A stretch of 64,000 nt of DNA from positions 682,001 through 746,000 of the forward strand of contig JBLDXI010000007.1 in the NCBI GenBank assembly GCA_047495785.1. Reading direction: 5' to 3'. Numbering within the stretch: the first letter of the stretch is position 1; every line of letters begins with the position of its first letter. Origin of the DNA: Lepidodermella squamata. Its lineage: Eukaryota; Animalia; Gastrotricha. Below, one piece after another: positions 12,201 through 29,019 of this stretch. The notes below the pieces were generated by a model. The model was not told the DNA's origin. It did not search any database and saw nothing but the letters and a program-made list of their open reading frames with translations. Both the position numbers and the translations under genes were made by a program.

Positions 12201-15200
12201 TTCGGCATCGGCGATATTCAATTTCTCTGTGATCACTTGTGATCAATGTCTCAAGTGAAAATGGGCTTCGTAAGAGGTGCGGAATCGCCAGGTTTTACGT
12301 GATAACATTTCAAGAAGTAGCCCTCTCATTATACGAAAATAATACCACTAAAACAGCACTACTACGGTAGCGTTAGGGCTACTGCTATTTCAGTGCTACC
12401 TAGCGCTTCAGAAAAAAATCGGAAAAAACACCTCGCAGTTAGGAAGGGCAGTTACCTGATTTTTCATCCCCAACCACGTGACCTCTCATCGCTCGCTCAA
12501 TTCAAGGTAACTGGCCAATGCGGGTCCTTGATTGATGGACAATCAATGCTAATTTGTATGCTAATTTGTTAGATTATTGCTATGCTTATTTGGTATGCTA
12601 ATTTGTTAGATTTCACAAATATGTAGTCTGGGCGAATTTTTAAAATGCTACGGCGTCTCTACGGCGCCGTAGTGACCCGCCGTACCGCCACCGTAGTTCA
12701 CCGTGCTGGCAGTGTCCTACTATTACGGTGCGAGTGCTATTATTTTCGACTAGAATTGTAAAGAAAAATCTCGTATTTTCGCAATTAGCACTACATTGGG
12801 CAATTGGGAAACAAAACTTGTTGGCACGGAAATGTGCACGACCGGTAAATAGCCTTGGTAAATGGCTACGAACGCAAACCTTTCCTGCGGGAATGTTGTC
12901 AAACTTGCGAGTGTTGTAACCAGTAACCAGCACCCTGGTCACTTTCTCGAAAAATGAAAAATGACATAAATAAATCAGCCAGTTTTTCATTTATGATATG
13001 TGCTCATTTTGTTGTTTCTGTTGTAGCAGCTGTGAAAAAAGCATCGCTTAATAAGTCCGAATTTTAAGCTGTCCATAGTCACAAGTGTTTAGAAACCGGT
13101 GCGTCGAAAAAGCGACGCAAAATTGATCGATCGTATAAATCGGTATGGTTTGTTTTCATTATTGCCCATATTATTAATATTAATTTCTGGCGATTGTTCT
13201 CGTGGTTTTCGACACCAAACATGGCTATTTTGCCCAAAATAAAACCGCAATAAAAATGTGAGGATGAACATTTCCGCTGATAAAACATAAAAGCTGATGA
13301 AAGATAAACTGGACTTTTCCTAATTCCTCAGTTGCGTAATCTTAACAATGCATCAAACTATGGATGAAGGTAAGGAGGGCCACGAAACCCCTCCTTCGTG
13401 TAATAAGGACGATTATAACATAATTTCGAGCCCTATTATCAATCGGCTGATGGATTAAAAAGGAATACTGCTTTTCGAATAATGGTGGTTGTAGCCAACT
13501 AATGCTCCTGTCTACATGTTGTTCGAGATGAATCTATTTGTTTCAGAAGACAGTTTTTTGAGAATTCGCTGAATTTAATGGTGATTTTTGTTACATTATT
13601 GTGGTCAATCTTAATACCCAAGAAATATCCGATCAGCGATTACAGGCCACTAGAAATTTCCAAAATTTGGGTCCGCTAACAGCCAAATCTGGTTACGCTA
13701 CAGCTAATTTGGTTCCGGCGGTAAAAGGAGGACCCATATTATTTTGTATGACAACTTCCGCGGCGAGGTGACTTTTCCTGCTAAAATACCTCCGGCTAAG
13801 TTACCCCACAGCAAGGTACTGCTGAACCAAAGCTATACAAGGCTAATTTTGTAACAAAAATGCCGTGATTTTTTCGAATTTTCGAAAATTTGAAAGTTGA
13901 GTTTTTTCAGTGATGTCGTTCGTCTTGCGACGTAAGGGACCGCCTGTGCTAGCGTATATTTCTATATACAATTATACTGCTATATGGCGGTTGTTTACAA
14001 CTGCGGCGCGGTTGTATCCCAAATTACTACTTTCGGTTCAAGGGCTATAAAATTGCCATTAGCTGCGATTGCTATCTTGCGCTCTTGGACTCTTGAAGAG
14101 AATAGAGAAATTCTGCTGCTTCTTCGCTTATCTTTTCTATGACTTTTCAAAGTTTTCTACTGCTCTTCTGGAATTCTTTGATTTAAGATTTCAAAGGTAG
14201 CAAAAGCGAACTGCCGTAAGCCGTTGCCGTGCATCTTTATTTTCAACGCAACGAAATACTCGAAAATGAACAAAGGAAATGAAACCATGAAAATAATTCA
14301 TGAAACTTTGTTTCAACAAATATGGTGATAACAGGCTGAATATATCGAAATAGCCAGCACTCAGCAATAGTAGAGTAACGACCTTTTACCGGAATTTCGC
14401 CAATTTTCCAGTTTCGATTCCCAATCAATTTCCAATATCCAATCAGCTATAACTGAAGAGGAGACTTCGAGTACAAGTTGTAGTATAATAATCCTATCAA
14501 CAATGCAGAATTTAAAATTTAATACAGCAGGATGTAGGATGCAGGATGCCCTATTTCTACTTTAATAGCTTCGGAGATATTGCAATAAGATGTTAATGAA
14601 TCATTACCAACTATTTTTGAAATGACCCATTCTAAATAGAAAGTTAATCTGATTTCTACGAAAAATTATAAATGATATTTATGAACACTTAATTTTGTTG
14701 AAAGTAGAACTCGTCCCTGGAAGTTAGCGGATAATCTTTGAAGTGTCGCAATTAGGAAACAAGCGATATTTAAAGTTTTCTGAAAGTGTATCACTTTTAA
14801 CCGACGTAACAATTTTCAAGAGGAGATGACGGCGATACTCCATTGGGTATCTAGCTAACTATGTAACTAACGATAACTAAATTAACAAGCCACAGAAATG
14901 GGAGCTTAAGCGTCGTTGAATAACTCGGATTTGGGCTTGTATATATACATATATGTCAGTTACAAGATGAATACCGTCATTTGGGGTAATCTGGGTCATT
15001 GGGGCTATTCGGACGAATGTTCATGCAAACAGGAGAATGAGCATGGCTAAAAACTACCCGGCCGTTGGCGATGAAATTTTGCACGGAGTTAGATGGAAAG
15101 ACGACCCACATGCCATAAAAATTTCATGACCTGAGAGTAAGTGGTTGTGAAGAAATGAGCTTACCTTTCAGGTGTAAGTTTAACTCAGTTTAAGCACAGT

Positions 15201-15409
15201 TCTGCGTTGAATTACCTGGACCCGAAGAGAATTTTGCTGGACCTGCGCCCAATTTTTCCTGAATCTACAGACGCTAGGTAAACCATGAAAATTAAAAACG
15301 CCCCGATCCGACTCATACTTTTGTCTAATTAATTGCGTCCGATTAGCCCCACGAAAAAATTGGAATCGGAACAGAGAAATGCGGCAGAATTGGAATATTC
15401 TAATGAGCT

Positions 15410-17494
15410 TTGTTGTTGATAAGTTCCTCAGCAAATGAGGCATACTTCGAATTTAAGAGGTTTGTAAAACTTTTGATTAAGGTTTACCGAATGAAATATC
15501 TGCGATTGAATATTAAATTTTCAAAAAATTCTTCTGACCAACAGCGAGGAAATTCTCGTGGTCCACAAAATCATGGATGGTACGATGGAAATTCTGATCC
15601 AGAATTTGAATATTTCAAGTTTTTGCACAATAAGTACGAGTCAGGCCATCTTGGCACAAGGTCACACGAGTGGCCAACGTACAACATGCTTTTTGAAAAA
15701 TTCGGCCACCAAAATTACGCAGATAAGGACGAGGACTATCAGTTTCTAACAGCTAACCGCTCAGAAAATTTCGACACAGCCAGTGAGGGTAGCCTGATCG
15801 ACGAAGAAGTTGATAGTGAAGAAGATGCCGAAATTGAGGTAGCTCGAGCTGAAAGTGACATGCTCGAAGAAACCGAGTCGGTAGCAACAAACAGGCAAAC
15901 AAGGAAGCGAACAAACCAGTCACCGTCTGATGACGCCAAAAAAGTTCGACGCGGCGACCACCAATGCGAGAAAATCCTTTCACAAGCCAGCTTTGAGAGC
16001 TATCTCCAGGAGTGGAAGACCATCCACACTACGCCTGAGGTAGAAAACGCCTGGGTGGAGCAAATGTTGTTTGGCTGGAGGAATACATCAGCCCTACAGC
16101 AACTTGAACGTATGTTTCATCACGCCCCATCTAGTCGAGCGACGCTGAAACTGTGGCACGCACTGAACCCGAGCGATAAATGGCTCCTTGTGAAGCAGTG
16201 GAACCAAACACCGATCAATAAACAGCTCAACCTCCAGAGCAGCCTAGAAAGAGGCGAAACGTTCCCTCCGATTGAACCGATGTTCATCAAAAGTGACCGA
16301 AATGAGTTCCACACGTACATGACAACAAAATCGAAACCGACAGGAAAGCAAGGCACAGGTCATCAGAACCAAAGCAGAAACCACAATCAGGATCGGAGAA
16401 ATACCGACCAAAGCGATGATGACGACTCAGAAGGAAGCGAGCCACAGACGTCTAAGTCAACACCCAGACAACCGATGGGTTGGGTAATCGACAGAGTGAA
16501 GGGTTACCTATCTAAAAGAGAAATCATGAACGAAATCGAGAAACTCGCACCGAACGCTACCTTCAAAAAAATTGTCAAGTTGCAAAAAGGAGTCATCTAC
16601 TTACTGCCAGAACCAGCAGACAGGGAAAAAGTCGACCAAATTTTCAAAACCCAAAACTTTCCATCTGATATCTTCGGAGGTCAGAAAATCTCGATCCACA
16701 GACCAGGCGAATCGGGCAGGTTGACAGGAGCAGAGGAAGCGAAGAAAGTTGTTCTAAAGAGCGTTGACCGAGACCTAACAGTGGATGACATCAGATATTA
16801 CCTTGAAAAAGCAGGATATCAACCGACTGAGTTATTCTGGTTAACTCCAGAGTCAGAGAAAACAGGACTGTGTAAGCTCGTCTTCAGCTCAGCAGAAGAG
16901 GCCGACAAACTCAGGACCGCCGGAAGGGTCGCAATAGGTCCATGCATCTACAAATGCACAATCTCAGCCCCAAAACCAAGCATACCGAGATGCTTTGTGT
17001 GCCAAGGTTGGAACCATGTCATCGGAAACTGCCCGATGCTTGCCGAGATGGGGAAAAACGCAGCCCCGCCAGAAGTACTGAACAAGTTGAGAACCTGCGC
17101 CAAGTGCGGAGGAAAAGGTCACCACAACAAAGAGTGCTCGGTTGGTACATTTCACTGCTCAAACTGCGGTAGCCCTGATCACCCAGCAACGTCACACAGC
17201 TGCCCGTCCTACGTAGAGGCAAAAAGGATGCAAGAAGAACACCAAAAAAGAAGAGCAGAAGAACGTATGACGAAAGCAACCGGTACCCTGAAACCCGCAC
17301 CGGTCCCTGCATTCAACGTGTGGGCCGAAAGGCTGGAAAGGAGCGTGGACAACCAAGTCGACATCATCCTGAAAATACTTGACCGATTAATCCCTAAGAT
17401 CGAGCAAGGCATGACGACTGAGCAAAAGCTTAAGTTAGTGAAAACCGAACTGCGCAGTATCAAAAAGGAAAATGAAAATACCAAGTCTTCATAA
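15410..17494 (+). CDS. LINE ORF1 (gag-like nucleic-acid-binding protein); first ATG at 15491
   Basis: 694-codon ORF with an RRM-like region and three CCHC knuckles: CFVCQGWNHVIGNC, CAKCGGKGHHNKEC, CSNCGSPDHPATSHSC. Directly upstream of APE-RT. Confidence 0.93.
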   Translation: MLLISSSANEAYFEFKRFVKLLIKVYRMKYLRLNIKFSKNSSDQQRGNSRGPQNHGWYDGNSDPEFEYFKFLHNKYESGHLGTRSHEWPTYNMLFEKFGHQNYADKDEDYQFLTANRSENFDTASEGSLIDEEVDSEEDAEIEVARAESDMLEETESVATNRQTRKRTNQSPSDDAKKVRRGDHQCEKILSQASFESYLQEWKTIHTTPEVENAWVEQMLFGWRNTSALQQLERMFHHAPSSRATLKLWHALNPSDKWLLVKQWNQTPINKQLNLQSSLERGETFPPIEPMFIKSDRNEFHTYMTTKSKPTGKQGTGHQNQSRNHNQDRRNTDQSDDDDSEGSEPQTSKSTPRQPMGWVIDRVKGYLSKREIMNEIEKLAPNATFKKIVKLQKGVIYLLPEPADREKVDQIFKTQNFPSDIFGGQKISIHRPGESGRLTGAEEAKKVVLKSVDRDLTVDDIRYYLEKAGYQPTELFWLTPESEKTGLCKLVFSSAEEADKLRTAGRVAIGPCIYKCTISAPKPSIPRCFVCQGWNHVIGNCPMLAEMGKNAAPPEVLNKLRTCAKCGGKGHHNKECSVGTFHCSNCGSPDHPATSHSCPSYVEAKRMQEEHQKRRAEERMTKATGTLKPAPVPAFNVWAERLERSVDNQVDIILKILDRLIPKIEQGMTTEQKLKLVKTELRSIKKENENTKSS

Positions 17495-20267
17495 TATGTC
17501 ATATCAACGCAAATCGACTTACTAAGGCAAGAATCATAGAACTGAAAACCATAGCAAGAACATTCAACGTAGACATTATTTGCATCAATGAAACTTTCCT
17601 GAAACCTCACAAGACTTTCTATCTGAAAGGTTACAAGGTTTTCCGACACGACCGCCTACATATAGACGGCGGCGGGGTTGCCATACTAATAAGAGAAGGA
17701 ATAGAATGCGAAGACCTAGGAGGCTCAACCATAGACAACTGTGAAATTCAGATGGCACAAATTAAACTTGAAGGCGTAGCAGCCATCAAAATAGTTTCAG
17801 TATACTGCCCGCCGACCATCATTCTGTCCGATGCCGCCATGGCACACATCAAACCCGATGTAGACACGATCATGTGCGGTGACTTCAACGCGCATGACTA
17901 TGCTCTAGGCACAACCGGTAGGCTCGACGCTAGCGGGGCAAAACTAGTATTTCACCTACGCAACTCTAAGTTAAAACTACTGTCGCAGGGTGAACACACG
18001 TACACAACGCGTAAAGGCAGAAAGGAATGCCTCGATCTATTCATAGCCGGTGAAAAAGCAGCTAAGCGGGCGGTATCAGTCGAGGTTCTACCAGACATAG
18101 GATCTGACCACCTGCCAGTAGCACTACATGTAAGAGTAACGGCCAAGGCCCCTAGTAGCTTCCCTGAACTTCGTCTAAACTTGGATGCAATGAAAACAGA
18201 ACAATTTAAGGACGAAATCGACAAAATGTGTGAAAGGTTCGACACTACCGACCTGACTTCGATAGAGAAGATCGACGCAGCAATAGAAAATCTTGAATCA
18301 ATAGTAAACCAAGCGACGACTACCACTACACCGAAATGTGTAGCCGGCAAACTCAGAGGCTGGCGACTAACAGCAGAGATTAAGACCGCCATAGACGAAA
18401 GAAGAGCAGCAAGAAGGGCTTGGGAGCTTTCACGCTCAAGCCGAATGAGAACAAGGTATAACGCAGCCACAAGAAAGGTCAAGTACCTTGTTGCTAAAGA
18501 AAGAGCAGGGCGATTTAAAAGACGGTGTACCGAGTTATCCAAAATGTTGAAAGACAAACCCAGACTATTCTGGAAAGAATTCCACGTTCTATCGAACAAC
18601 ACCTTAGCATCGAATCAGAGACAATATCCGCCAATCAAAGACAGCACAGGCCTTGACCAGTTCACAAACTCTGGGAAGGCGACAATCTTTGCAGACCACC
18701 TCCAAACGGTCTGGAAAACACCCGATGATCCAAAGTTTTGTAAAGATACAGAAGAGTTAGTAGAAAAAACGTTGAAAAAATACAAACATGAAATTGAACG
18801 ACCGAAAGTAGCTAGACGTGACCGGTCTGGAAGATGGACGGTCAAACCTGGTGAGGTGGCTACGCTAGTCAAGCGACTGAAGAATACAGCACCAGGGGAG
18901 GATGGTATCATGAATGCCGTCCTTAAGCGAGCGCCTGACAGCTACTGGGTTAAAGCTACCGATATTTTTAATGCCTGTTTAAAATTCAGTTTTTTCCATC
19001 AAAATGGAAAAAAGCCGTCGTAGTCCTCATTCCTAAAGAGGGCAAGGACTGGAAAAGCCCGAAGGGGTATCGACCGATCAGCCTACTTAACTCGCTCGCA
19101 AAAATTCTCGAGAGACTGGTAGCCCGTAGAGTATTGGAAGAGATGCGGGAGCGGAAAATTATGCCGCTTAGTCAATCCGCCTTCCAAAACAAGCACTCCG
19201 TAGAGGATCACCCCTTCCGTATTGCGCAACTTGCCATTACAGGTCTCATCGAAAGCGAAGAAACCTACGTGACATGTTTAGACATCGAGGGCGCATTCGA
19301 TCGAATCTGGCAAAGGGCAGTCATATACAAAATGCTGACCTTTGGCTTTCCCGACATTGCCACAGCATGGGTCGCGGACTTCCTGAATAAACGCTCGTTC
19401 TGCTGTAGGGTCGGCAACGACCATAGTACGGTTAGAGAGATCACCGGGGGTGTGCCACAGGGTTCGCCCCTGAGCCCGATCCTCTATGTCCTTTACACCG
19501 CTGACTTGCCCAGAGAAATCCCGAACACTGTCATGAACAGCTTGTTCGCAGACGACGTTGCTCTAGCTGCGAAGCACAAAACGCCAGCAGTGGCAATAGC
19601 CCGAATGAACGCAGGCCTGAGAAAAGTCTCTGACTACTTTAACCGGTGGAGATTGAAGGCGAATGCGGGTAAAAGTCAAGCCCTGCGAATCTCCAACCGA
19701 ACGAGGGCGCCGCCATCAGCAATCCAGCTAGATGGATGCGACCTCGAATGGCACGAATCAGTGAAATACCTCGGGGTTCTGATCGACAAAAAGCTGCTAT
19801 TCAAAAAGCAAGTGGAAAGTGCCATCGCGAAAGCCTCCGTCAGAATTACAGCGCTACATGCGGTCTGTAGGAAAAACTTTGGTCTTTCCAAGGAGGCGGC
19901 AGTTTTGGTTTACACCACTTACATCAGACCCGTCTTGATTTTCGGCTGTCAAGCATGGCTTGGAATTGACAAAGGACTTTGGAAGAAGCTCGAAACACTG
20001 CAAAACCAAGCTTTGAGAATTGCCTTGCGACTAGCGCCTTGGCATAGCACAGCAGATACGCTGGCAAGAGCGAAGGTTGAGCCCATCAGGGTTTACGCTA
20101 CCAGATTAGCGACAAATTGGCTAACCAGATCGATCGAACACAACAACCTCGTTGGCAGAGAATCTGCTCTGCAACTAAAGCGTCCAATCGACTTGAGAGT
20201 CTACCGTAACGCGAAACGATCGCCGCTCTCGGCGATGAGGCTAGCCTTAGAAGGTCGGCGTCCGTAA
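17476..20267 (+). CDS. LINE ORF2 (APE endonuclease + reverse transcriptase, Jockey/I group) with one frameshift at ~18995
   Basis: Open from 17476 in the -1 frame relative to ORF1: IICHINAN, DIICINETFL, GGGVAILI, VYCPP, GDFNAH, SDHLPV. After the T-run: WKKAVVVLIPK, YRPISLL, LDIEGAFDRIW, GVPQGSPLSPILY, FADDVA, VKYLGVLID. Confidence 0.93.
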
Positions 20268-20398
20268 CTACACTAATATTTTATAGCTAACACTTGCCTG
20301 TTCAACCAGCGACACCCACGCAAGACTCGGGCTTCTCACAGGCTCGGTCCTCTGTTTGGGTGGTTTACTAAGTGCCTATTTCCAATTTTTAACTTTCG

Positions 20399-20490
20399 GC
20401 TCAGATCCGCTCAAGCCCGAACCCTAAGCGCTCCGTTTCGTGACGTTAGGGCGGGGGCCTTAGGCAAGCCCACTCGGCGTGGATCTGAGC
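20399..20490 (+). ncRNA. Structured RNA motif, copy 1 (LINE 3' UTR)
   Basis: Closing stem GCTCAGATCC/GGATCTGAGC, inner stem CCCTAA/TTAGGG preceded by GTGACG, hairpin GGGC/GCCC, then TCGGCGTGGATCTGAG. Confidence 0.55.
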
Positions 20491-20505
20491 AATGTATAAA
20501 TCGAA

Positions 20506-20598
20506 CCGAACTCATCCACAGCCGTACCTTATGCACTCTGTTTCATGATGATAGGGCGGGGCCTTAAGCAAGTCCACTCGGCGTGGCTCTGGGTTCGG
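20506..20598 (+). ncRNA. Structured RNA motif, copy 2 (LINE 3' UTR)
   Basis: Diverged tandem copy: CCGAAC/GTTCGG, CCTTAT/ATAGGG, ATGATG, GGGC/GTCC, TCGGCGTGGCTCTGGG. Substitutions mostly preserve pairing. Confidence 0.55.
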
Positions 20599-20753
20599 AC
20601 CTCGAAAATCGTAGGACCAGTCTAGGCTACAATCCCTGGATGCCCGGCCCTGAATGATCTGCTGTCAGAGATTTCAGCGACGACCCTAAAAAGTCCGCTA
20701 GGCGCCAGGTTGAGTGTACTGATGACGACTCGGAAGATTACGATCTACATATA

Positions 20754-23700
20754 CAGGGTGTTCTTTTTAAAACCGAACATCCTGCCGTAGTCGCGAAAAA
20801 TAAATTTGCCGGCTATTTTACAAAAATAATTTTACTAAAATAATTTTTTATCACTTTTAATATACATTTTTAATTTTATTTTCAATTGCACGATACCCTT
20901 GAATTTTAGCGCGCGTTGCCACGTCGACGCGTCGGTTTTTAAATTTTAGCGGTTAAAACGCCTGAAATCAGGGTTTTCGCGCCTGGTTCCTAAGGTAACC
21001 GGCAAGCGCGCGGCTCTTTGCCGCGCATCATTCAAGTCAGTTAAGCGAGCTAAATGTTTTAGCCGCGCCGTTTTTTCTTATTCGGTTTCAGTTTTCGCAA
21101 TGTGGTATACCCAAAATCGGTGAAAAGAGCCTTAAATTGCGCTTCCTTGCCGTTGAAATCCACCGCTGGAATCAAGAAGACGGCGGTGCAACGTGGTTTT
21201 CTGCTGTCTTGAGGAGTCTAATGATATAACAAGCGGCCTTGAAAACTTGTCGCTCAAGTTTCAGTCCGCGGATCAGAGAAACGCACCCTTTTCTGGGCGA
21301 AATGCAATGCAACTAGCTGTTTCACGATGAAAAGGGCAGTGGTATCATGTAAATAAACGGAAAGCTGGGGGGAAACATGTCGAATTTACTGGCATAGATG
21401 TTGCTGATGCGGAAGACACGTTGCCTTCCTTCTTTATCCTTGATGTTCTCTCATCCTTGTGTGATACTTCGTCGTCCGCAGTGAGGCCGTAGCTAACTTC
21501 TATAGACTAATTAAAGCTGATCTCAAAGGCGTTACCACCGTTATCATCAAAGCTGTCTCGTAGAACATGTTCATAATATCAAAAAGAAAAAATACAAGGT
21601 ATTTTAGATTACGATGATTTAGCCGCTCAGTTCATTTCGTTTGCTGCTGTTCGTAACATCAGTCATGTTCCTTACTAAGGATAGTGGTTTACAAGTCAGC
21701 GTAGCTTGGTGCTTAGTAAGGACTGTCATCCTAATAGTCATAACTATGGACACTCACTCTTCACTATACGCCGCGTCTTTTAAGATGCACAGGTCCATCT
21801 GAGATCAGATCCTTAGATCGCTCAGTCTGAAGCGGCGAAGTCTGAGTAAGGATTGTTGAGTAAGCCATTCCTACCAAGCATACCAGTGACACCGCGTCCT
21901 TACTTGGAAGCCATCTTGCTAAGGATGTCTTGCTTAGTAAGGACATCCTTAGTAAGGAATTCCTTATAGCAAGATTGCTTTCAAGTAAAGAGAGCGCTTA
22001 GCATCTCTTTTACTCATAAATGCATCCTTAACATCCATAGCATGGAAAATCAACATCGCTAGGCTATGAACAGCCGTTTATTTGCACCATTCAGATCAAG
22101 TTGAGTGTTTAACAAAACGTCATGTAAACTTTAACATCATTGGCAGCATCCGGCGCGCGGCGTGAGTCGTTAAGAGTGAGAATTTAGCATCATTTTCGGC
22201 GAAAAATTCATTGGTATCACTGGATCCGCCGGAGATTTGAAAACAGCCGATGACTGAGACAACGCTTAGGACTGATAACCGAGATCTTATTCAGACATTG
22301 ATCACTCGTTTGCGGCGGCGCAGGGCAGAGGCGGGAATATTCCGTGGTGATGCCCGTGTCCTGTCATCCATTTCCCTGCGGTAACCGCAGTTGCGGGCGG
22401 GTGTAACTGTTTGTGAGACTGCGGTAACAAAGCAAGTTTAACACCACGCCAGTCTTTGTCTTTTATATGCATCCCTTTGATCTCTGATTCTACGCGTCCT
22501 GTAAGAACAGTCCAGCATTCTCGCATAGATTTTACGTTTCTTGTAATATTTTAGTGGTAAACTATTTGATTGATGTAACTTCAAGCGCAATAAGTCACAA
22601 TAATATAACGCGCCCCACCCGCTGAATTTCCCGGAGAAATAGAAGAATAAGCGAAAACAAACGATTTCAAACCTTAGCCCTAATGCGGCCGCTGAAAACC
22701 AGTAGCAGCGGCTGAAATGTGTCAACGGGTAAAGTCTTTTGCAGAATTTTAACACGATTAAAGCTATATATTCACACAATGCCTAAAATTCATGCATCGA
22801 CGTCATATGGCCCCATAAATCACGAAGGATTGCGGCTACAACGCGTTGAAACGTCCTCTAACAAGGATGGTATGGTATCAGAAAGCCGACCCAGCGCTCG
22901 AGTTAGGGCGGCAACACCAGCATTTTTCTGCTTTATTGTCAAACTGACATCTTCTCTTAGCAAGTTCACTTATGTTGGCCAAAATTTAACCGCTAAATTA
23001 TTTGCTACGACCAAAAATATCCCGAAAAACCCGAAAAAACCCGAAAAATGCATGCCAAGCCACTTAAAGCGGAAAACCGCGTTGTCCAACCTAAAAATAA
23101 TGGTAACAAAGAAATATACAGTTTATTCTACAAGAAAACCATGAGAAAGATTGTTCTTACCAGATTATTTCATGAAATGGGCTATCCTTACGGTTGCTGA
23201 TCTGACTCAATGATGACGTCTAACCAGAGTGTGTAGGGCAGACGAAAGTCGATCCTGCGCTCGAATTACGGCGGCAACACTAGCTTTTTCCTGATTTGTC
23301 GTCATATTGATATAGTCTCCAAGCAAAATCACCCAATTTTACCCATATCTGACCGTTGATTATTTCCCAGCATCAATAAATGTTCCGATAAACCCGAATA
23401 ACTCCATTTTAACGCCTAAATGCATCCTAAGCCGTAAAACGAGAAAAACCACGGTGACCCCCCAAAAAGACATGGTAACTAAGAAATTTACACTCTATTC
23501 TACCAGAAAACAATGAGTAACAATGCTAATTAAGCAAAATTCATGACATGGACCATCTTGAAGATCGTTCATCTTGCCAGAGGATGAGATCTAACACAGC
23601 AGGTATGGCAGAAGGAAGTCCCTCCTGCTCACGAGTTAGTATGGCAACACCGACTTTTTCTTGTTTCATTGTCAAAGTATTTATGTCTCCTAGTGAATTC

Positions 23701-24512
23701 ACTCATTTGAGCCCCCATTTGACCGCTGAATTGTTTGCTAACATTGTAAATGTTCCGAATATCCCGAAAAACTCCATTTATCGACAGAATGCAGCAGCAA
23801 GTGAAAAACCGCGGTGACCCTCCAAAAAGTGACGGTAACTAAGTAGTATTTACTCTGCTTTACAAGAAAACAATGAGAGACAGTGTTTTTGACGGGTGAT
23901 TTTAAAGCATAGACCTCCTTGAAGATGGTGATAATGAGATCTATGCTCTGAAAGACCGGCTGGCTGTTAGGGCAGACGTGCTAAAAATAACCATCATCCT
24001 ACAAAAACGGCTGTGGTAATCTTGTAGAGAATACATTACTGTACTTAGAAACACTGTTTCCGCAAGGTATAACCGCACTTAGGTGAAAGTTTCCCGGGTT
24101 AAACGCTTAAGATCTGCGAAAAACGGCATAAAAATGGCTTGTTTAGGCTTAGCGCATACGTCTAATTGAGCCATATTTAGAAAAAATGACGCCGGCTGCC
24201 TTATTAAATGCTTGAAATGCTATCAGAAAAACACTAACAAAGGTGTCGTCACCGGTGATAAAATGCGGAATTACGGGGATGAAGTTGCGCGCCGGGGAAC
24301 TTGCGGTGCGCGGAGCGGCTACAACGCGAAAACGCGCGGCATCGCGCAGCACGCTTTTCCGTAGCAACAAAATTTTTATTTAAAAAAAATTATTAATATA
24401 ATAAAATAAAAATATTTTTAAAAGGATATTTAATTTTGTGCATAAAAATTTGCGGTAGCACGCGATTTTCCAACGCGCGCGGCGGATGTTCGGTTTTAAA
24501 AAGAACACCCTG
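20754..24512. mobile_element. Non-autonomous Tc1/mariner-type element (3.76 kb)
   Basis: Perfect TIR CAGGGTGTTCTTTTTAAAACCGAACATCC at both ends, TA TSD at 20752-20753 and 24513-24514. No transposase ORF. Confidence 0.92.
22860..23890. repeat. Three diverged ~365-bp tandem repeats inside the Tc1-type element
   Basis: Anchor TACMAGAAAACMATGAG recurs at ~23128, 23501 and 23861. GGCAACAC, GAAAAMCRCG and GGTAAC recur in register. Confidence 0.8.
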
Positions 24513-24753
24513 TACATGTTTTCTGAATGATTTAATTTTAGCCTGTCTTTATTTCAACTTCGAAGGCGCTGGATCCGGAACTATGTGAGCATGACTAAGT
24601 TTTTACTTTAATTTTCTACTATCGAACAAGTTGTATTTTGGCTCTTTATTTTTCGGTAAGAAATGTATGAGGGTGCCCACTTAGACGTTTAAGGCTTGAT
24701 ATTTTTTACAACACACTCAACACGCAACGGACGTCGAATAAAACACATATATT

Positions 24754-24940
24754 TGGTTAAGGACAGTAAATTTGGCATGGCGAAAGCCTACAGGATGAAT
24801 GCCCGTCTGATCCATTTTATGCATCAGGTCGACTGTGATCCTCCGATTGCAGTGACGCTGTAGGGACCGACTTGATGGTCCGATCGGCGTGGCTCTTCTG
24901 AGCCAAATGCCCCAGTAGGTTAGGGGGGGGGGGGGGGAAT
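24754..24940 (+). ncRNA. Structured RNA motif, copy 3 (left direct repeat of the ORF1-only unit), box C/D-like closure
   Basis: ATTTGGC...AGGATGA (24792)...GTGACGCTGTAGGG, hairpin GGACC/GGTCC, GATCGGCGTGGCTCTT-CTGA (24898)-GCCAAAT, then CCCCAGTAGGTTA and G15. Confidence 0.6.
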
Positions 24941-25152
24941 TTTCTGAGGTTACTGTCGTTACGAACCCGAGTGGTGTTCCTTAGAACGCGCACTCTTGAT
25001 TATTTTCAAACAATTTCTGCTGCTGTTTTTATCGATACGCCAACTTCGTCAGATATTTCCAACAACAAGCTGCTTCAACATCAAGCTGTACGTTATCGAT
25101 CGATACTACTACAAGCGCGCGGCAATCCCATTCATCGATTCAACCACGTGGC

Positions 25153-26139
25153 ATGGCTTCAACAATGAATGCTACTGAAAAATATGCATGGGATTTCTTC
25201 AATGGTTTCTTTCCGGAATACAAAGCAAATCTGATCGAAAAAATTGGTTATTCCAGTATTAGCCGCATCCTTAGGGCGTATGCCTCCTTGCTCGACCTCG
25301 ACCAGGCTGAACGAGACTTCCTACTCGATATGATGGAAGCCGATGAATTTGGAGAAAATCGCTGGATCATCCATGAACGGAACTGCGACGATAAGTCAAC
25401 CCAAACAAGGCCGATTAAGCCGATTGTCCAACTGAATAAGTCAACCGAAACCGAACCGATCGTTCGTGTTAAGCCAAAACGTGTTAAGCCAATCCTACCG
25501 CCTAAGAAAACAAGCGAAACTACTGTTCTACTCCAAACGAATCCGAACTGCGACCGGAAACAACTCTGGTCTAAAATCGTGGCTTCGGCACCGAACGCCA
25601 GCTTCAAGAGCTGTAAGCCAACAGCAGATGGGCTGTCTATTCGTCTCGATTCGAGCGAACAGGCGGCTCAGATCCGATGTCTGGAAAAGATTCCTGGTGC
25701 GAAAATCATTCAAACTGCTAAGCCGAAATACCGAATTGTGTTGACCAACTTCGACACCGATGCTGTATCAACGACTGCGATCAAGGCTGCCTTTGGCGAC
25801 AAGATGACTAAGATGGTCGAACTACGCGGCAAACAAGCTATGTTCGAGCTCAACGACTACGATCTTGCTGAAAATTGCGTGAAAAACGGCCTGATTTGCA
25901 AGCCGTTCATGTTACGATTCCGATGGTTTATTGTCAAGCAATCTGATGTTGTTCAATGTTTCAACTGCCAGCGATATGGCCACCTGGCTCGAAACTGCTC
26001 TGATGAGACGCGATGCTTACGATGTGGTCGCAAACACGACGTGAAGACTTGCTTGCGGGGTGTTCGTTGCTGCAATTGTGGTGGCGAGCACACCGCGAAC
26101 TCGAGGGATTGCCCTCTGCGCCGGCCTTCGGCTGGCTGA
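25153..26139 (+). CDS. Stand-alone LINE-ORF1/gag-like protein (328 aa), no ORF2 downstream
   Basis: Intact ORF ending in three CCHC knuckles: CFNCQRYGHLARNC, CLRCGRKHDVKTC, CCNCGGEHTANSRDC. Preceded by an RRM-like segment. Confidence 0.9.
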   Translation: MASTMNATEKYAWDFFNGFFPEYKANLIEKIGYSSISRILRAYASLLDLDQAERDFLLDMMEADEFGENRWIIHERNCDDKSTQTRPIKPIVQLNKSTETEPIVRVKPKRVKPILPPKKTSETTVLLQTNPNCDRKQLWSKIVASAPNASFKSCKPTADGLSIRLDSSEQAAQIRCLEKIPGAKIIQTAKPKYRIVLTNFDTDAVSTTAIKAAFGDKMTKMVELRGKQAMFELNDYDLAENCVKNGLICKPFMLRFRWFIVKQSDVVQCFNCQRYGHLARNCSDETRCLRCGRKHDVKTCLRGVRCCNCGGEHTANSRDCPLRRPSAG

Positions 26140-26290
26140 AACGAAAGTTTCATGGGAAATTGCAATGCAATTTCAAGACGGGTTGGGGGGTAACCTAGTT
26201 GCTCATCCACTCTAAATTTGGGAAAATTTTTAAGGACGGGATAGTTTTGGTCCCAAGGGGCGGGTTCTGGGTCTAAGTGGTGACGGCGGG

Positions 26291-26439
26291 TGGTTAAGTT
26301 GGTCCCACTTTGGCTACATGATGAATCCGCTGCCAGGTCCGTCTGTGATCTTCCATCACAAGTGACGCTGTAGGGGCAAATTTGATAGCCCGATCGGCGC
26401 GGCTCTGAGCCAAATTCCCCAGTAAGTTAGGGGGGGAAT
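26291..26439 (+). ncRNA. Structured RNA motif, copy 4 (right direct repeat of the ORF1-only unit), box C/D-like closure
   Basis: TTTGGC-TAC-ATGATGA (26318)...GTGACGCTGTAGGG, hairpin GGGC/GCCC, GATCGGCGCGGCT-CTGA (26405)-GCCAAA, then CCCCAGTAAGTTA and G7. Confidence 0.6.
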
Positions 26440-26550
26440 GAAAGGCTAGTGCATGTGGCATGAATTAAAAATTCGCTAATTTACTACTTCTAATTAAAAA
26501 ACTAACTAAAAGCTAAAAACCATCGATATGCACTGCATTCGAATAATTGC

Positions 26551-26645
26551 AAAAAAATTGTTTCGTGGCCTGGACTCGAACCCTCGTTTTGTACTTTGCT
26601 GTGTTTTCTAGAAGCACATCCAAAGCCACTCGACCACTGAACACA
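26551..26645 (-). pseudogene. tRNA-derived (Ser-AGA-like) Pol III unit, not a canonical tRNA
   Basis: Minus strand has A box TGGTCGAGTGG, CTAGAAA, B box GGTTCGAGTCC and a T7 terminator. Acceptor and T stems pair poorly. Confidence 0.6.
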
Positions 26646-29019
26646 ACACATCAGTAATATTTGAATTGAATATTTATGTATCATTAATAGCCCCACACCT
26701 GTCCGAATAGCCCCATCCATGGGGCTATTCGGAATCCTGGTGCCATTGGAATCAGGACCTTCTGAAACGTGTAAAAATGCAAAAAATCAGGGGGTAATTT
26801 TTTTTCGCCGTCCGGATAGCCCCAACTGACGGTAGTGACAAGTGAAAGGTAATTGGAACGTTTTTATGCGAATGAAGAGGGGAACTTGTCACCCATCAAC
26901 TGCCTGTAACTGACGTGAACAAGCCCGAATCCGAGTTATTCAACGACACTCACAACTACGGAGTAGTGAGGCGATGCATCCTGCTTTGACTGCTTTGGTT
27001 CAGCTGTTTTCTTCCCTTTCAAAACGAAGAATGTCTACATCTATTGGAGACTAATTAAGCTCCTTAAAAGTGTTACATTTGAAACCCCAGAGCAGATCAG
27101 ATTTGTCTCTAAAAAGCTGCGCTTGCCAAGCAGAACAGATCGCTCCAGTTGCTTCAGAGATCTACCCGTAACTCATCTTGAAGTAGGCGCCTTTTTTGCC
27201 TTCACTTACTCTGAAACTCTGAGAATTATTTTGCATTTGCATTTGCCAATAGATCGGTTTGAAGTGCCGTAAGCATTCCTGATAGCCCTAATTACAGATA
27301 AGATTCCAGCCAAAATGACCAAGTGGATGCGCTTTGTAAATTATACTTCTGCGCATGATTGTTTTCTTTGATAACTATTAGTCCGTGGCATTTTGCTCTT
27401 GTATTGGCATTTTGATCGTAGTATTTCATTAGGAAGTTAGCGCAAAAATCGTGAAATGCCATCCCAATCCCCATCCCAAATGCCCAAACTTGAATGGTGG
27501 GTCAGGTTTTGTCGTATACGAATCAAGCCAATAATTATGTACGAATAGTCGAAAAGCTGTACATATTATGCACATATAGTCGAAAAACTGTACTACATAA
27601 ATATGTACGAACATCCCCTTCGTATCAAAATATCTGCGAATGGAGAAGGAACAAAAAAAACAGATTTTATCAGGCACCCCTCTGACCAATCACGGTATGA
27701 CTAACCCCTATTTTTGCCTGCGTGCTGTCCACGTGAACCGAGGCTTGCGGCCGTAAACTTTCTCTTCTGAGAAAATTCTGTTTCGAACCCAGGACCTCTG
27801 TGCAACCAGTGTTTCAACAAATGGTGATAGTCATGATTCAACTAGACTATACAGAGATACAGAAAAGTATACTTGAGAATGAACTGTTTTACCCTATGAG
27901 TTTACCCTATGGATATTGAGAAAAATAGATAGAATTATCCTAGACTACGCTTAAAGGAAACGAAGGTGAAATAAGGAAGAATAGGATAAATTTGGTTGAT
28001 CTTAAGAATTTAGCCATGATATAACGGAGAAATTGTCTGAAGCGTTTGTGCTCAGCACGCATTCTGGTAGGCGTTGCAACCGCACGGTATCGGATGCGCC
28101 GCAATAATGATGCTATTACCGACGAATACAAAGTAGCTTATACCAGTACCAAGTATTTTATTACCAAGAGCATGAAAGTACTGCCAAACGAGGTCTCTTA
28201 CGTCGCAACACGAACGATGTATGCTAGGAAATTGATAACTACTTTGGCAGTTTTCGTTGCTCAAATTCTCTCACTCAGCTATGTTTCGCTATTTTCTGTA
28301 AAACATGGCCATCAAATGCCCCAGAATGGAATTCAAAAAATTGTGCGCAATTATTTTTAAATGCGATTCTCGAAGTTTGATTGAAAATTTAGGTCACGGG
28401 AAGCTATTGCGAGTATGAGGCTTTATTTTTTCAAAGGCCTTGAAAAGGGGGGTTTTGTAAATGGGACGGGCGGTAATAACGGGTATATGAAGCTATTACG
28501 GAAAATACGGTATTCAAAAATACGGTATTCTGTCGCATGAAATCCGCGGACGACAGCCGAGGGATAGTCACAGTCGTATGCGCACAAAACAATGACACGC
28601 GCGGGCGCTGAGACAGTGTCGCGCGCGGCTAATTTTTATATCAAAGGAAACCAAATTTGCAAAAAACTTGTCCAACTAAGTTTTTAACCAGAAAAATCGT
28701 TATTTTCGACATCAGTTACCCTATTTCCGCGTATTTTCATCGAAATTTGATAATTTAATTATTTTCACCTAGCGAACGGTATGAATAAGTGTTACAGTGA
28801 TAAAACACACCTCAGTGATGCGGCGTGCTACTCTGATCATCGTAGGCTGGTGCTGATGCTGAATTGAAGGCGATGGGGCATTGGAAATGTATCGTTTCTG
28901 AATCAGAAGCGCAATCAGAGTCAGTTGACCCGAAAAAAGGACTTTTGACGGACCCAGGAATTTGATCCAAATATCGGATCTCGCAGTGAATTTTCGGCAG
29001 TTGAAGTGTTAAGGACTTA

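Follow-up and report, generated by a model that had tools for sequence, protein, structure and literature searches.

Candidate modules for recognition by a trans-supplied reverse transcriptase in the 3′ untranslated regions of non-LTR retroelements from a gastrotrich

Location, repetition, RNA folding and conservation in outside relatives jointly suggest that four copies of a short sequence element in Lepidodermella squamata (Gastrotricha) are cis-acting RNA modules of retrotransposon 3′ untranslated regions (UTRs), which would serve for recognition or priming by a reverse transcriptase (RT) supplied in trans, a reading drawn from sequence that we hold with moderate confidence. The copies lie within 64,000 nucleotides of contig JBLDXI010000007.1 (assembly GCA_047495785.1, positions 682,001 to 746,000 of the forward strand), which form the window of this analysis and in which all coordinates are given, at 20399-20490 (c1), 20506-20598 (c2), 24770-24908 (c3) and 26309-26414 (c4), all on the + strand. 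This transposon-borne RNA or DNA module is real; it represents a known type of element and constitutes a new family.

Location and specificity of the four copies

The four copies, which had been described at these positions in an earlier reading of the bare sequence (hereafter the sequence-only reading), were all found in the window. The word TCGGCGYGG has four matches in the 64 kb, with 0.72 expected, and every one of them falls within a copy; the spaced patterns TAGGG-N15-30-TCGGCG and RTGAYG-N1-3-TAGGG also have four matches each (0.28 and 0.26 expected, respectively), all inside the four copies and on the + strand. Neither RTGAYG-N1-3-TAGGG nor TCGGCGYGG occurs anywhere else in the window.

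The copies occupy the sense-strand 3′UTR position of retroelements without long terminal repeats (non-LTR retroelements): c1 and c2 follow the stop codon (20267) of an RT open reading frame (ORF), and c4 follows the stop codon (26139) of a gag ORF. The module runs into poly(G) in c3, in c4 and in L022, a metagenome relative described below, whereas c1/c2 are not adjacent to a tail, being found ~250 nt from one that consists of 14-mer repeats. Six sequencing runs are listed for the region 20300-26450, of which five hold part of it (one of them more than half), and none is recorded as RNA.

Two pairs with a common 3′ half

The sequence-only reading had assigned one order of elements to all four copies. 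The shared words and a 3′ half, consisting of RTGAYG, UAGGG, a hairpin (hairpin B) and the CGGCG box, are indeed common to all of them, but the copies fall into two pairs that share only this half, and a single four-copy architecture is too strong a description. In blastn comparisons, c1 and c2 are 83% identical over 71 nt and c3 and c4 82% over 107 nt, whereas between the pairs only a block of 19-24 nt is recovered, with an E of about 0.3. When members of different pairs are compared at full length, their local score is significant relative to dinucleotide shuffles (p <= 0.0005 to 0.013), and that of the interior alone is not (p 0.014-0.9); the comparison with shuffled controls that had been set for the motif thus comes out in its favor at full length, by virtue of the 3′ half only, whereas the interior fares no better than the controls.

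Covariance models (CMs) draw the same line. A single-sequence CM of c4 with a hand-drawn fold retrieves c3 at E 4e-5, but its match to c2 rests on the outer helices and reaches just 15.6 bits (E 0.07), and c1 goes undetected; conversely, the CM of c1 retrieves c2 (53.1 bits, E 1e-10) and neither c3 nor c4, so that the models do not cross between the pairs at a significant level. Every stem that the sequence-only reading quoted does pair as stated, but the stems that it set against each other across the pairs as covarying counterparts are different helices. The CCCUAA/UUAGGG helix of c1/c2 encloses RTGAYG, whereas the UGUGAU/AUCACA helix of c3/c4 precedes it, and UAGGG is the 3′ strand of a helix in c1/c2 whereas in c3/c4 it shares positions with the 5′ arm of the hairpin that follows.

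Compensatory changes in the c1/c2 fold

A well-supported fold is seen in c1 and c2, which are tandem units of ~105 nt in the 3′UTR of a long interspersed nuclear element (LINE) and were analyzed by folding, pair counts and RNAalifold. On the + strand, the fold of c1 comprises a closing helix (20399-20410/20479-20490), a GCC/GGC helix (20415-17/20476-78), the CCCUAA/UUAGGG helix (20422-27/20446-51), which encloses a small hairpin holding GUGACG (20429-35/20439-45), hairpin B with the stem GGGC/GCCC (20455-58/20468-71), and the box UCGGCGUGG (20474-82). The second unit has the same fold, with an internal loop in its closing helix. A possible decayed third unit lies one period downstream of c2 at 20676-20704 (+ strand); it is the best non-member match of a profile of the 3′ half, at 5.9 bits and E 0.64, which is not significant on its own. 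When folded as single sequences and compared with shuffles, c1, c2 and c3 give z scores of -3.4, -2.2 and -3.6, respectively, and c4 a weak -1.6.

Comparison of c1 with c2 over 33 base pairs reveals four compensatory changes, four one-sided changes through G-U that leave the pair intact, and two broken pairs. The compensatory changes are distributed over three helices: the closing helix has one (G-C/A-U), CCCUAA/UUAGGG has one (A-U/U-A), and the small GUGAYG hairpin has two (G-C/A-U and C-G/U-A). Under random placement of the 15 substitutions that separate the two units, as few broken and as many compensated pairs arose in 7 of 10,000 trials (p = 7e-4). Moreover, RNAalifold applied to the model-guided alignment of c1 and c2 returns the same fold as the one drawn by hand. 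Since each G-U pair would turn into an A-C mismatch if the opposite strand were folded, the strand that folds is the sense (+) strand. Selection on RNA structure, which the sequence-only reading had claimed for the motif as a whole, is thus supported for c1/c2, and what is seen in the c3/c4 type is mainly conservation of sequence together with one compensatory pair.

A gag-only element with a poly(G) tail and its outside relatives

Between c3 and c4 there is a single ORF, an intact gag-like frame of 328 aa with a zf-CCHC domain (25153-26139, + strand; identified by ORF and Pfam analysis), and no ORF2 is present between it and c4 with its tail, so that the coding capacity of this element is gag-only. 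Together with CCCCAGUAAGUUA and a G7 run, c4 (26309-26436, + strand) forms the 3′ end of the element itself, its conserved 3′ module extending over 26362-26436; c3, with CCCCAGUAGGUUA and a G15 run (24770-24937, + strand; conserved module 24852-24937), is a copy of the same 3′ end that is located directly ahead of the element. A 13-nt segment, CCCCAGUARGUUA, separates c3 from G15 and c4 from G7. The ends of these elements have the form CCCN-A-UARG-UUAGGG followed by the G run (24909-24937 with G15, 26415-26436 with G7 and, in L022, 866-886 with G7), and they carry no poly(A).

Homologues of the gag protein were found by exhaustive phmmer searches at E 1e-56 to 1e-39, including P0122 (E 1e-56, 48% identity) and P0123 (51%); a word-indexed protein search with the gag sequence returned nothing useful, and the exact sequence is not on record. 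On L019, a contig from a Logan assembly, a complete gag is followed by ~360 nt of UTR and then by GUGACGCUGCAGGGACC..GGUCCGAUCGGCGCGGCU at the contig end, which the 3′-half profile (R3) matches at 23.3 bits (E 5e-7). On L022, a JGI metagenome contig without an ORF2, the end of gag and ~270 nt of UTR precede the complete module, which closes with ..GAGCCAAAUACCCUAAUAGGUUAGGGGGGG; the element terminates in GGUUAGGGGGGG and has the poly(G) tail. Since the gag-only architecture thus recurs on contigs from an unrelated sequencing run and from a metagenome, the family is not confined to this assembly. A CCCUAA/UUAGGG hairpin is present in L022 as well as in c1; CCCUAA and UUAGGG correspond to the common animal telomere repeat as read on either strand.

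The stretch between GUGACG and the G run shows 72-79% identity between the copies of the window and L022, compared with 48-51% for gag, and the remaining 3′UTR, including the 5′ half of the motif (closing strand, C-box-like GAUGA and inner stem-loop), aligns no better than shuffles (p 0.1-0.85). Given that the rest of the UTR is unalignable, the module is a segment that has been specifically kept. This observation bears on a rival explanation, namely that the likeness of the copies is one of descent only, produced by a tandem duplication in one case and by two copies of one end in the other, and that the stems are functionless. Several facts would sit well with such neutral relics: the LINE that carries c1/c2 is dead (its ORF2 is frameshifted), c3 is a fragment, most base pairs of the c3/c4 type are invariant, and the similarity across the pairs is weak. 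We nevertheless consider this explanation unlikely in the face of the four compensatory pairs of c1/c2 and of the persistence of the 3′ module in elements whose gag proteins are only about 50% identical.

The location of c3 ahead of the gag ORF could also be explained by a role at the level of DNA, in which elements are arrayed head to tail and the 3′ end of one drives transcription of the element that follows. A precedent is provided by HeT-A, a gag-only element that needs the RT of another element and acquires tags from the 3′-end promoter of the element upstream (bioRxiv 10.1101/782904), and here the 3′-end copy, including the G15 tail, is located 215 nt upstream of the gag ATG. However, the compensatory changes and the G-U pairs indicate constraint on RNA, and L019 has no upstream copy in the 191 nt before its ATG, although that contig may be too short to include one; we regard a DNA-level role as rather improbable. 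If the copies are RNA modules recognized by an RT, c3 may be either a 5′-truncated tandem neighbor or a HeT-A-like 5′ tag derived from the 3′ end of an upstream element.

Predicted fold of the c3/c4-type module

In 5′ to 3′ order, GUGACGCUG.AGGG is followed by hairpin B and GAUCGGCGYGGCU, then by two further hairpins, a small one of GGCU/AGCC and one of CCCN/GGG, and finally by UUAGGG and the G run. In c4 it is predicted to form three hairpins, the first being CGCUG/CGGCG around hairpin B (GGGC/GCCC, 26374-77/26388-91), the second GGCU/AGCC, and the third CCCC/GGGG, which involves the tail; in an alternative, long-range pairing, the box (26392-26402) would pair with 26327-26339. The same three elements, with the CCCN/GGG hairpin including the start of the tail, are returned by RNAalifold for c3, c4 and L022. 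Relative to c4, c3 has two extra self-contained hairpins. The box is predicted to be paired in all copies, namely with the upstream 5′ strand in c2 and c4, with the CGCUG beside hairpin B in c3, and in a mixed manner in c1.

Substitutions between c3 and c4 comprise one compensatory pair (A-U/G-C in hairpin B) and two exchanges between wobble and Watson-Crick pairs in the UGUGAU hairpin. Across c3, c4, L022 and L019, one pair alternates between A-U and G-C, each in two of the sequences, and two pairs vary one-sidedly, one-sided changes that include a G-C/G-U; the loop of hairpin B measures 3, 6, 8 and 10 nt in the four sequences, and the stems persist. Because covariation in the c3/c4 type does not reach significance, the case for structure there rests on thermodynamics and on the indel pattern, and the module appears to be conserved mainly as sequence, with a fold that is plausible and unproven.

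Comparison with known RNA families

The motif could not be placed in any known RNA family, as the sequence-only reading had maintained: Rfam, searched at gathering and at permissive thresholds with the whole window, an 8-kb region and the motifs alone, gave no match for it, the motifs alone returning nothing below E = 4, and ARAGORN detected no tRNA-like gene. The judgment, made by eye, that the motif does not fit hammerhead, HDV, twister or pistol ribozymes was likewise borne out by the absence of any match to an Rfam ribozyme model, including hatchet, with the motif alone and E up to 10. Likenesses to the Alu domain of the signal recognition particle RNA, 5S RNA, small nuclear RNAs of the U series, U3 and spliced-leader RNA were considered by eye and dropped, as no model matched.

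The proposal of a new ribozyme, in the form of a self-cleaving or RNA-processing element that would trim read-through or tandem transcripts, can draw on the compact multi-helix folds and on the 7-bp complementarity CCUACAG/CUGUAGG of c3 (5 bp in c4), which would give a nested topology like that of hepatitis delta virus (HDV) ribozymes. Yet a 7-bp complement is expected by chance in 139 nt, and L019 and L022 conserve neither the strand of the pseudoknot nor any of the 5′ half, which a closed catalytic fold would need. The HDV-like ribozymes of R2 and RTE elements, located in 5′UTRs, form a nested double pseudoknot with a P3 of 3 bp and L3, a P1.1, and a catalytic C in J4/2. The present sequences share with them a location in retrotransposon UTRs and, for c3, a nested pseudoknot that can be drawn, but such a P3, a P1.1 and the catalytic C cannot be placed here: the hairpin at the P3 position is far too long (9-13 bp with a loop of 4-5 nt), there is no junction or room for P1.1, which cannot form, and no Rfam model matches. 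The HDV-like assignment was therefore rejected, and we deem any self-cleaving or processing role very improbable.

A box C/D small nucleolar RNA (snoRNA), or another RNA that binds protein through a kink-turn, was suggested by c4, in which AUGAUGA follows the terminal stem of 6-7 bp by 3 nt and CUGA stands just ahead of the 3′ strand, and roughly by c3, which has GGAUGA and CUGA. In c3, however, a 12-nt hairpin intervenes between stem and box, a C box is missing from the corresponding place in c1 and c2, L022 has GACGAA and ACAGA instead, and L019 lacks the segment altogether; moreover, no Rfam snoRNA model matches and all copies reside in retroelement UTRs. The assignment was rejected, and such a role appears scarcely credible.

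Capture of a host RNA gene fragment, or mimicry of the target site of the element, is a further explanation to which we attach very little probability. In its favor, AGCCAAATGCC in c3 (24899-24909) is identical to 11 nt of the 28S target of R2 as printed in PMC13000458, and the words UUAGGG and CCCUAA recur. On the other hand, 4 of 636 tiles of the window match the 28S oligonucleotide equally well, a rate in the background that makes the likeness probably one of chance, c4 is mismatched in the 11-mer, and no Rfam model of a host RNA matches. One scan of viral contigs for the 28S word found no occurrence. As a separate observation, TTTGGCTAC in the 5′ strand of c4 (26311-26319) corresponds to the opposite strand of the 28S target site, and this likeness too is probably due to chance.

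Pattern scans of metagenome contigs and of genome contigs from GTDB yielded only matches in high-GC bacterial coding sequence at about the rate expected by chance, none of which was matched by the CMs. A scan for sigma-70 promoters and terminators, irrelevant to animal DNA, detected nothing.

Proposed function and parallels with known systems

LINEs of the stringent type have 3′ stem-loops in common with their non-autonomous partners, and this structure is where the RT recognizes the RNA and where target-primed reverse transcription begins; examples are eel UnaL2 with UnaSINE1, the R2 3′UTR and the SART1 3′UTR. The last ~85 nt of the gag-only elements, tail included, are the sole noncoding part kept across diverged relatives, which matches the pattern of pairs formed by a LINE and a short interspersed nuclear element (SINE) and points to a recognition or priming module. 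Furthermore, given that the gag-only elements encode no RT, the module would most likely be recognized by an RT supplied in trans. We propose that c3 and c4 represent the ~85-nt 3′-terminal module of a gag-only retroelement family with poly(G) tails, that the RT of an autonomous LINE recognizes modules of this type in trans, and that target-primed reverse transcription would start at the module. Binding by the RT or its ribonucleoprotein, priming and mobilization in trans are, by analogy with these systems, the most likely roles. The c1/c2 units would be a related module, tandemly duplicated in the 3′UTR of an autonomous-type LINE, whose fold has been kept by compensatory substitutions. Among the functions that the sequence-only reading had offered, an RT-recognition signal fits the context best (3′UTRs, position by the tail, gag-only element), whereas the ribozyme option finds no support.

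The likeness to the stringent LINE elements, drawn from general knowledge and not by alignment, lies in a structured segment on the sense strand at or near the 3′ end, before a tail other than poly(A); this segment persists although the remaining UTR diverges, and it occurs on elements without an RT of their own. The Rfam library includes retrotransposon 3′ elements. Differences are that the Rfam scans gave no model similarity, that the tail here is poly(G), that the presumed partner has a gag ORF and is not a SINE, and that the units in the LINE of the window are internal and tandem. HeT-A of Drosophila belongs to the jockey clade and has an oligo(A) tail. The present family shares with it the gag-only architecture and, in c3, a copy of the element's own 3′ end directly upstream, and differs from it in the poly(G) tail, in that no telomeric context was seen in the window and in the size of the putative tag, which would be about 170-185 nt. 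HAL1 ('half-L1') of mammals, which derives from L1, ends in poly(A) and lacks a specific 3′ structure, is similarly a non-autonomous, ORF1-only derivative that relies on the ORF2 protein of a LINE; here, in contrast, ORF1 of the neighboring LINE and the gag-only ORF have only the zinc knuckles in common (33% over 75 aa).

Several observations weigh against the proposed RT-recognition role. The similarity between the pairs does not extend beyond the 3′ half and falls short of significance when CMs are used for the search. In the four-sequence alignment of c3, c4, L022 and L019, 15 of the 20 base pairs are invariant and covariation is not significant (shuffle control, 78/500). In addition, c1/c2 are not at the 3′ terminus of the LINE, the tail of which is an AT-rich 14-mer repeat and not poly(G), and this LINE shares only the box and short words with the c3/c4 end; given the difference in tails, the LINE is at most a possible partner for the gag-only family. 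The motif is also absent from the available 3′ flanks of the RT relatives L001-L003 (about 50% identity), with only ~60-115 nt available after the stop codon on L002 and L003. Finally, the CGGCG of the box has two competing partners.

The last of these points admits another interpretation, which we consider quite unlikely, namely that the invariant CGGCG box, with its two mutually exclusive partners, is part of a two-state RNA device that would switch the transcript between an mRNA or packaging form and a form for priming. Both partners recur in c4 and L022, one being the CGCUG by hairpin B and the other a CGCUG/CCGC..GCC strand 50-70 nt upstream. Such a switch might act together with the UUAGGG-poly(G) terminus and expose the end for priming, a poly(A)-free mechanism of tailing and priming that, to our knowledge, has not been described for LINEs. 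A new self-cleaving fold would be a still less likely variant of this device.

If RT recognition in trans is the correct reading, the module would define the RNA handle of a poly(G)-tailed gag-only family present in at least three independent data sets, and would provide a concrete sequence with which to find the autonomous partner and to test the choice of poly(A)-less templates by RTs. In annotation, the segments should be treated as transposon tails and masked, and listing them as new noncoding RNA genes or ribozymes should be avoided.

The upstream LINE and neighboring sequence

The LINE that carries c1/c2 is a dead element of the APE type on the + strand (14801-20848), delineated by Pfam domains and ORFs. 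It comprises an ORF1 with CCHC knuckles (15410-17494), an APE endonuclease (17752-19023) and an RT (19134-20267); the RT is in a different frame, and ORF2 is thus broken. The best RT homologue is 53% identical. The element is bracketed by a 12-nt direct repeat, TATCACTTTTAA, at 14789-14800 and 20849-20860, the second copy of which adjoins the tail, a 14-nt tandem repeat (ATTTTACAAAAATA x2.4) at 20815-20847. The repeat is probably the target-site duplication that places the LINE at 14801-20848, although a shared word of at least 12 nt also arises in 49 of 1000 shuffles. With these boundaries, c1/c2 sit 130-330 nt into a 3′UTR of 581 nt.

The segment between the LINE and c3 was considered as a Tc1-type insert, a suggestion that found no support: neither a terminal inverted repeat (p 0.43) nor a continuation of homology (p 0.4) was detected, the ORFs tested contain no transposase domain, and the probable target-site duplication ends the LINE at 20848. 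The same interval holds about three units of a satellite-like repeat of ~365 bp with 69-88% identity (23014-23902). Some 270 nt downstream of c4, at 26705-26730, there is a perfect palindrome with 12-bp arms (GAATAGCCCCAT/ATGGGGCTATTC), which overlaps a sub-threshold TwoAYGGAY-like match on the minus strand (26639-26804; 27.9 bits, where the gathering score is 43). The minus strand at 1551-1751 holds another RT fragment, which is unrelated and shares 33% identity with the RT of the LINE over 69 aa.

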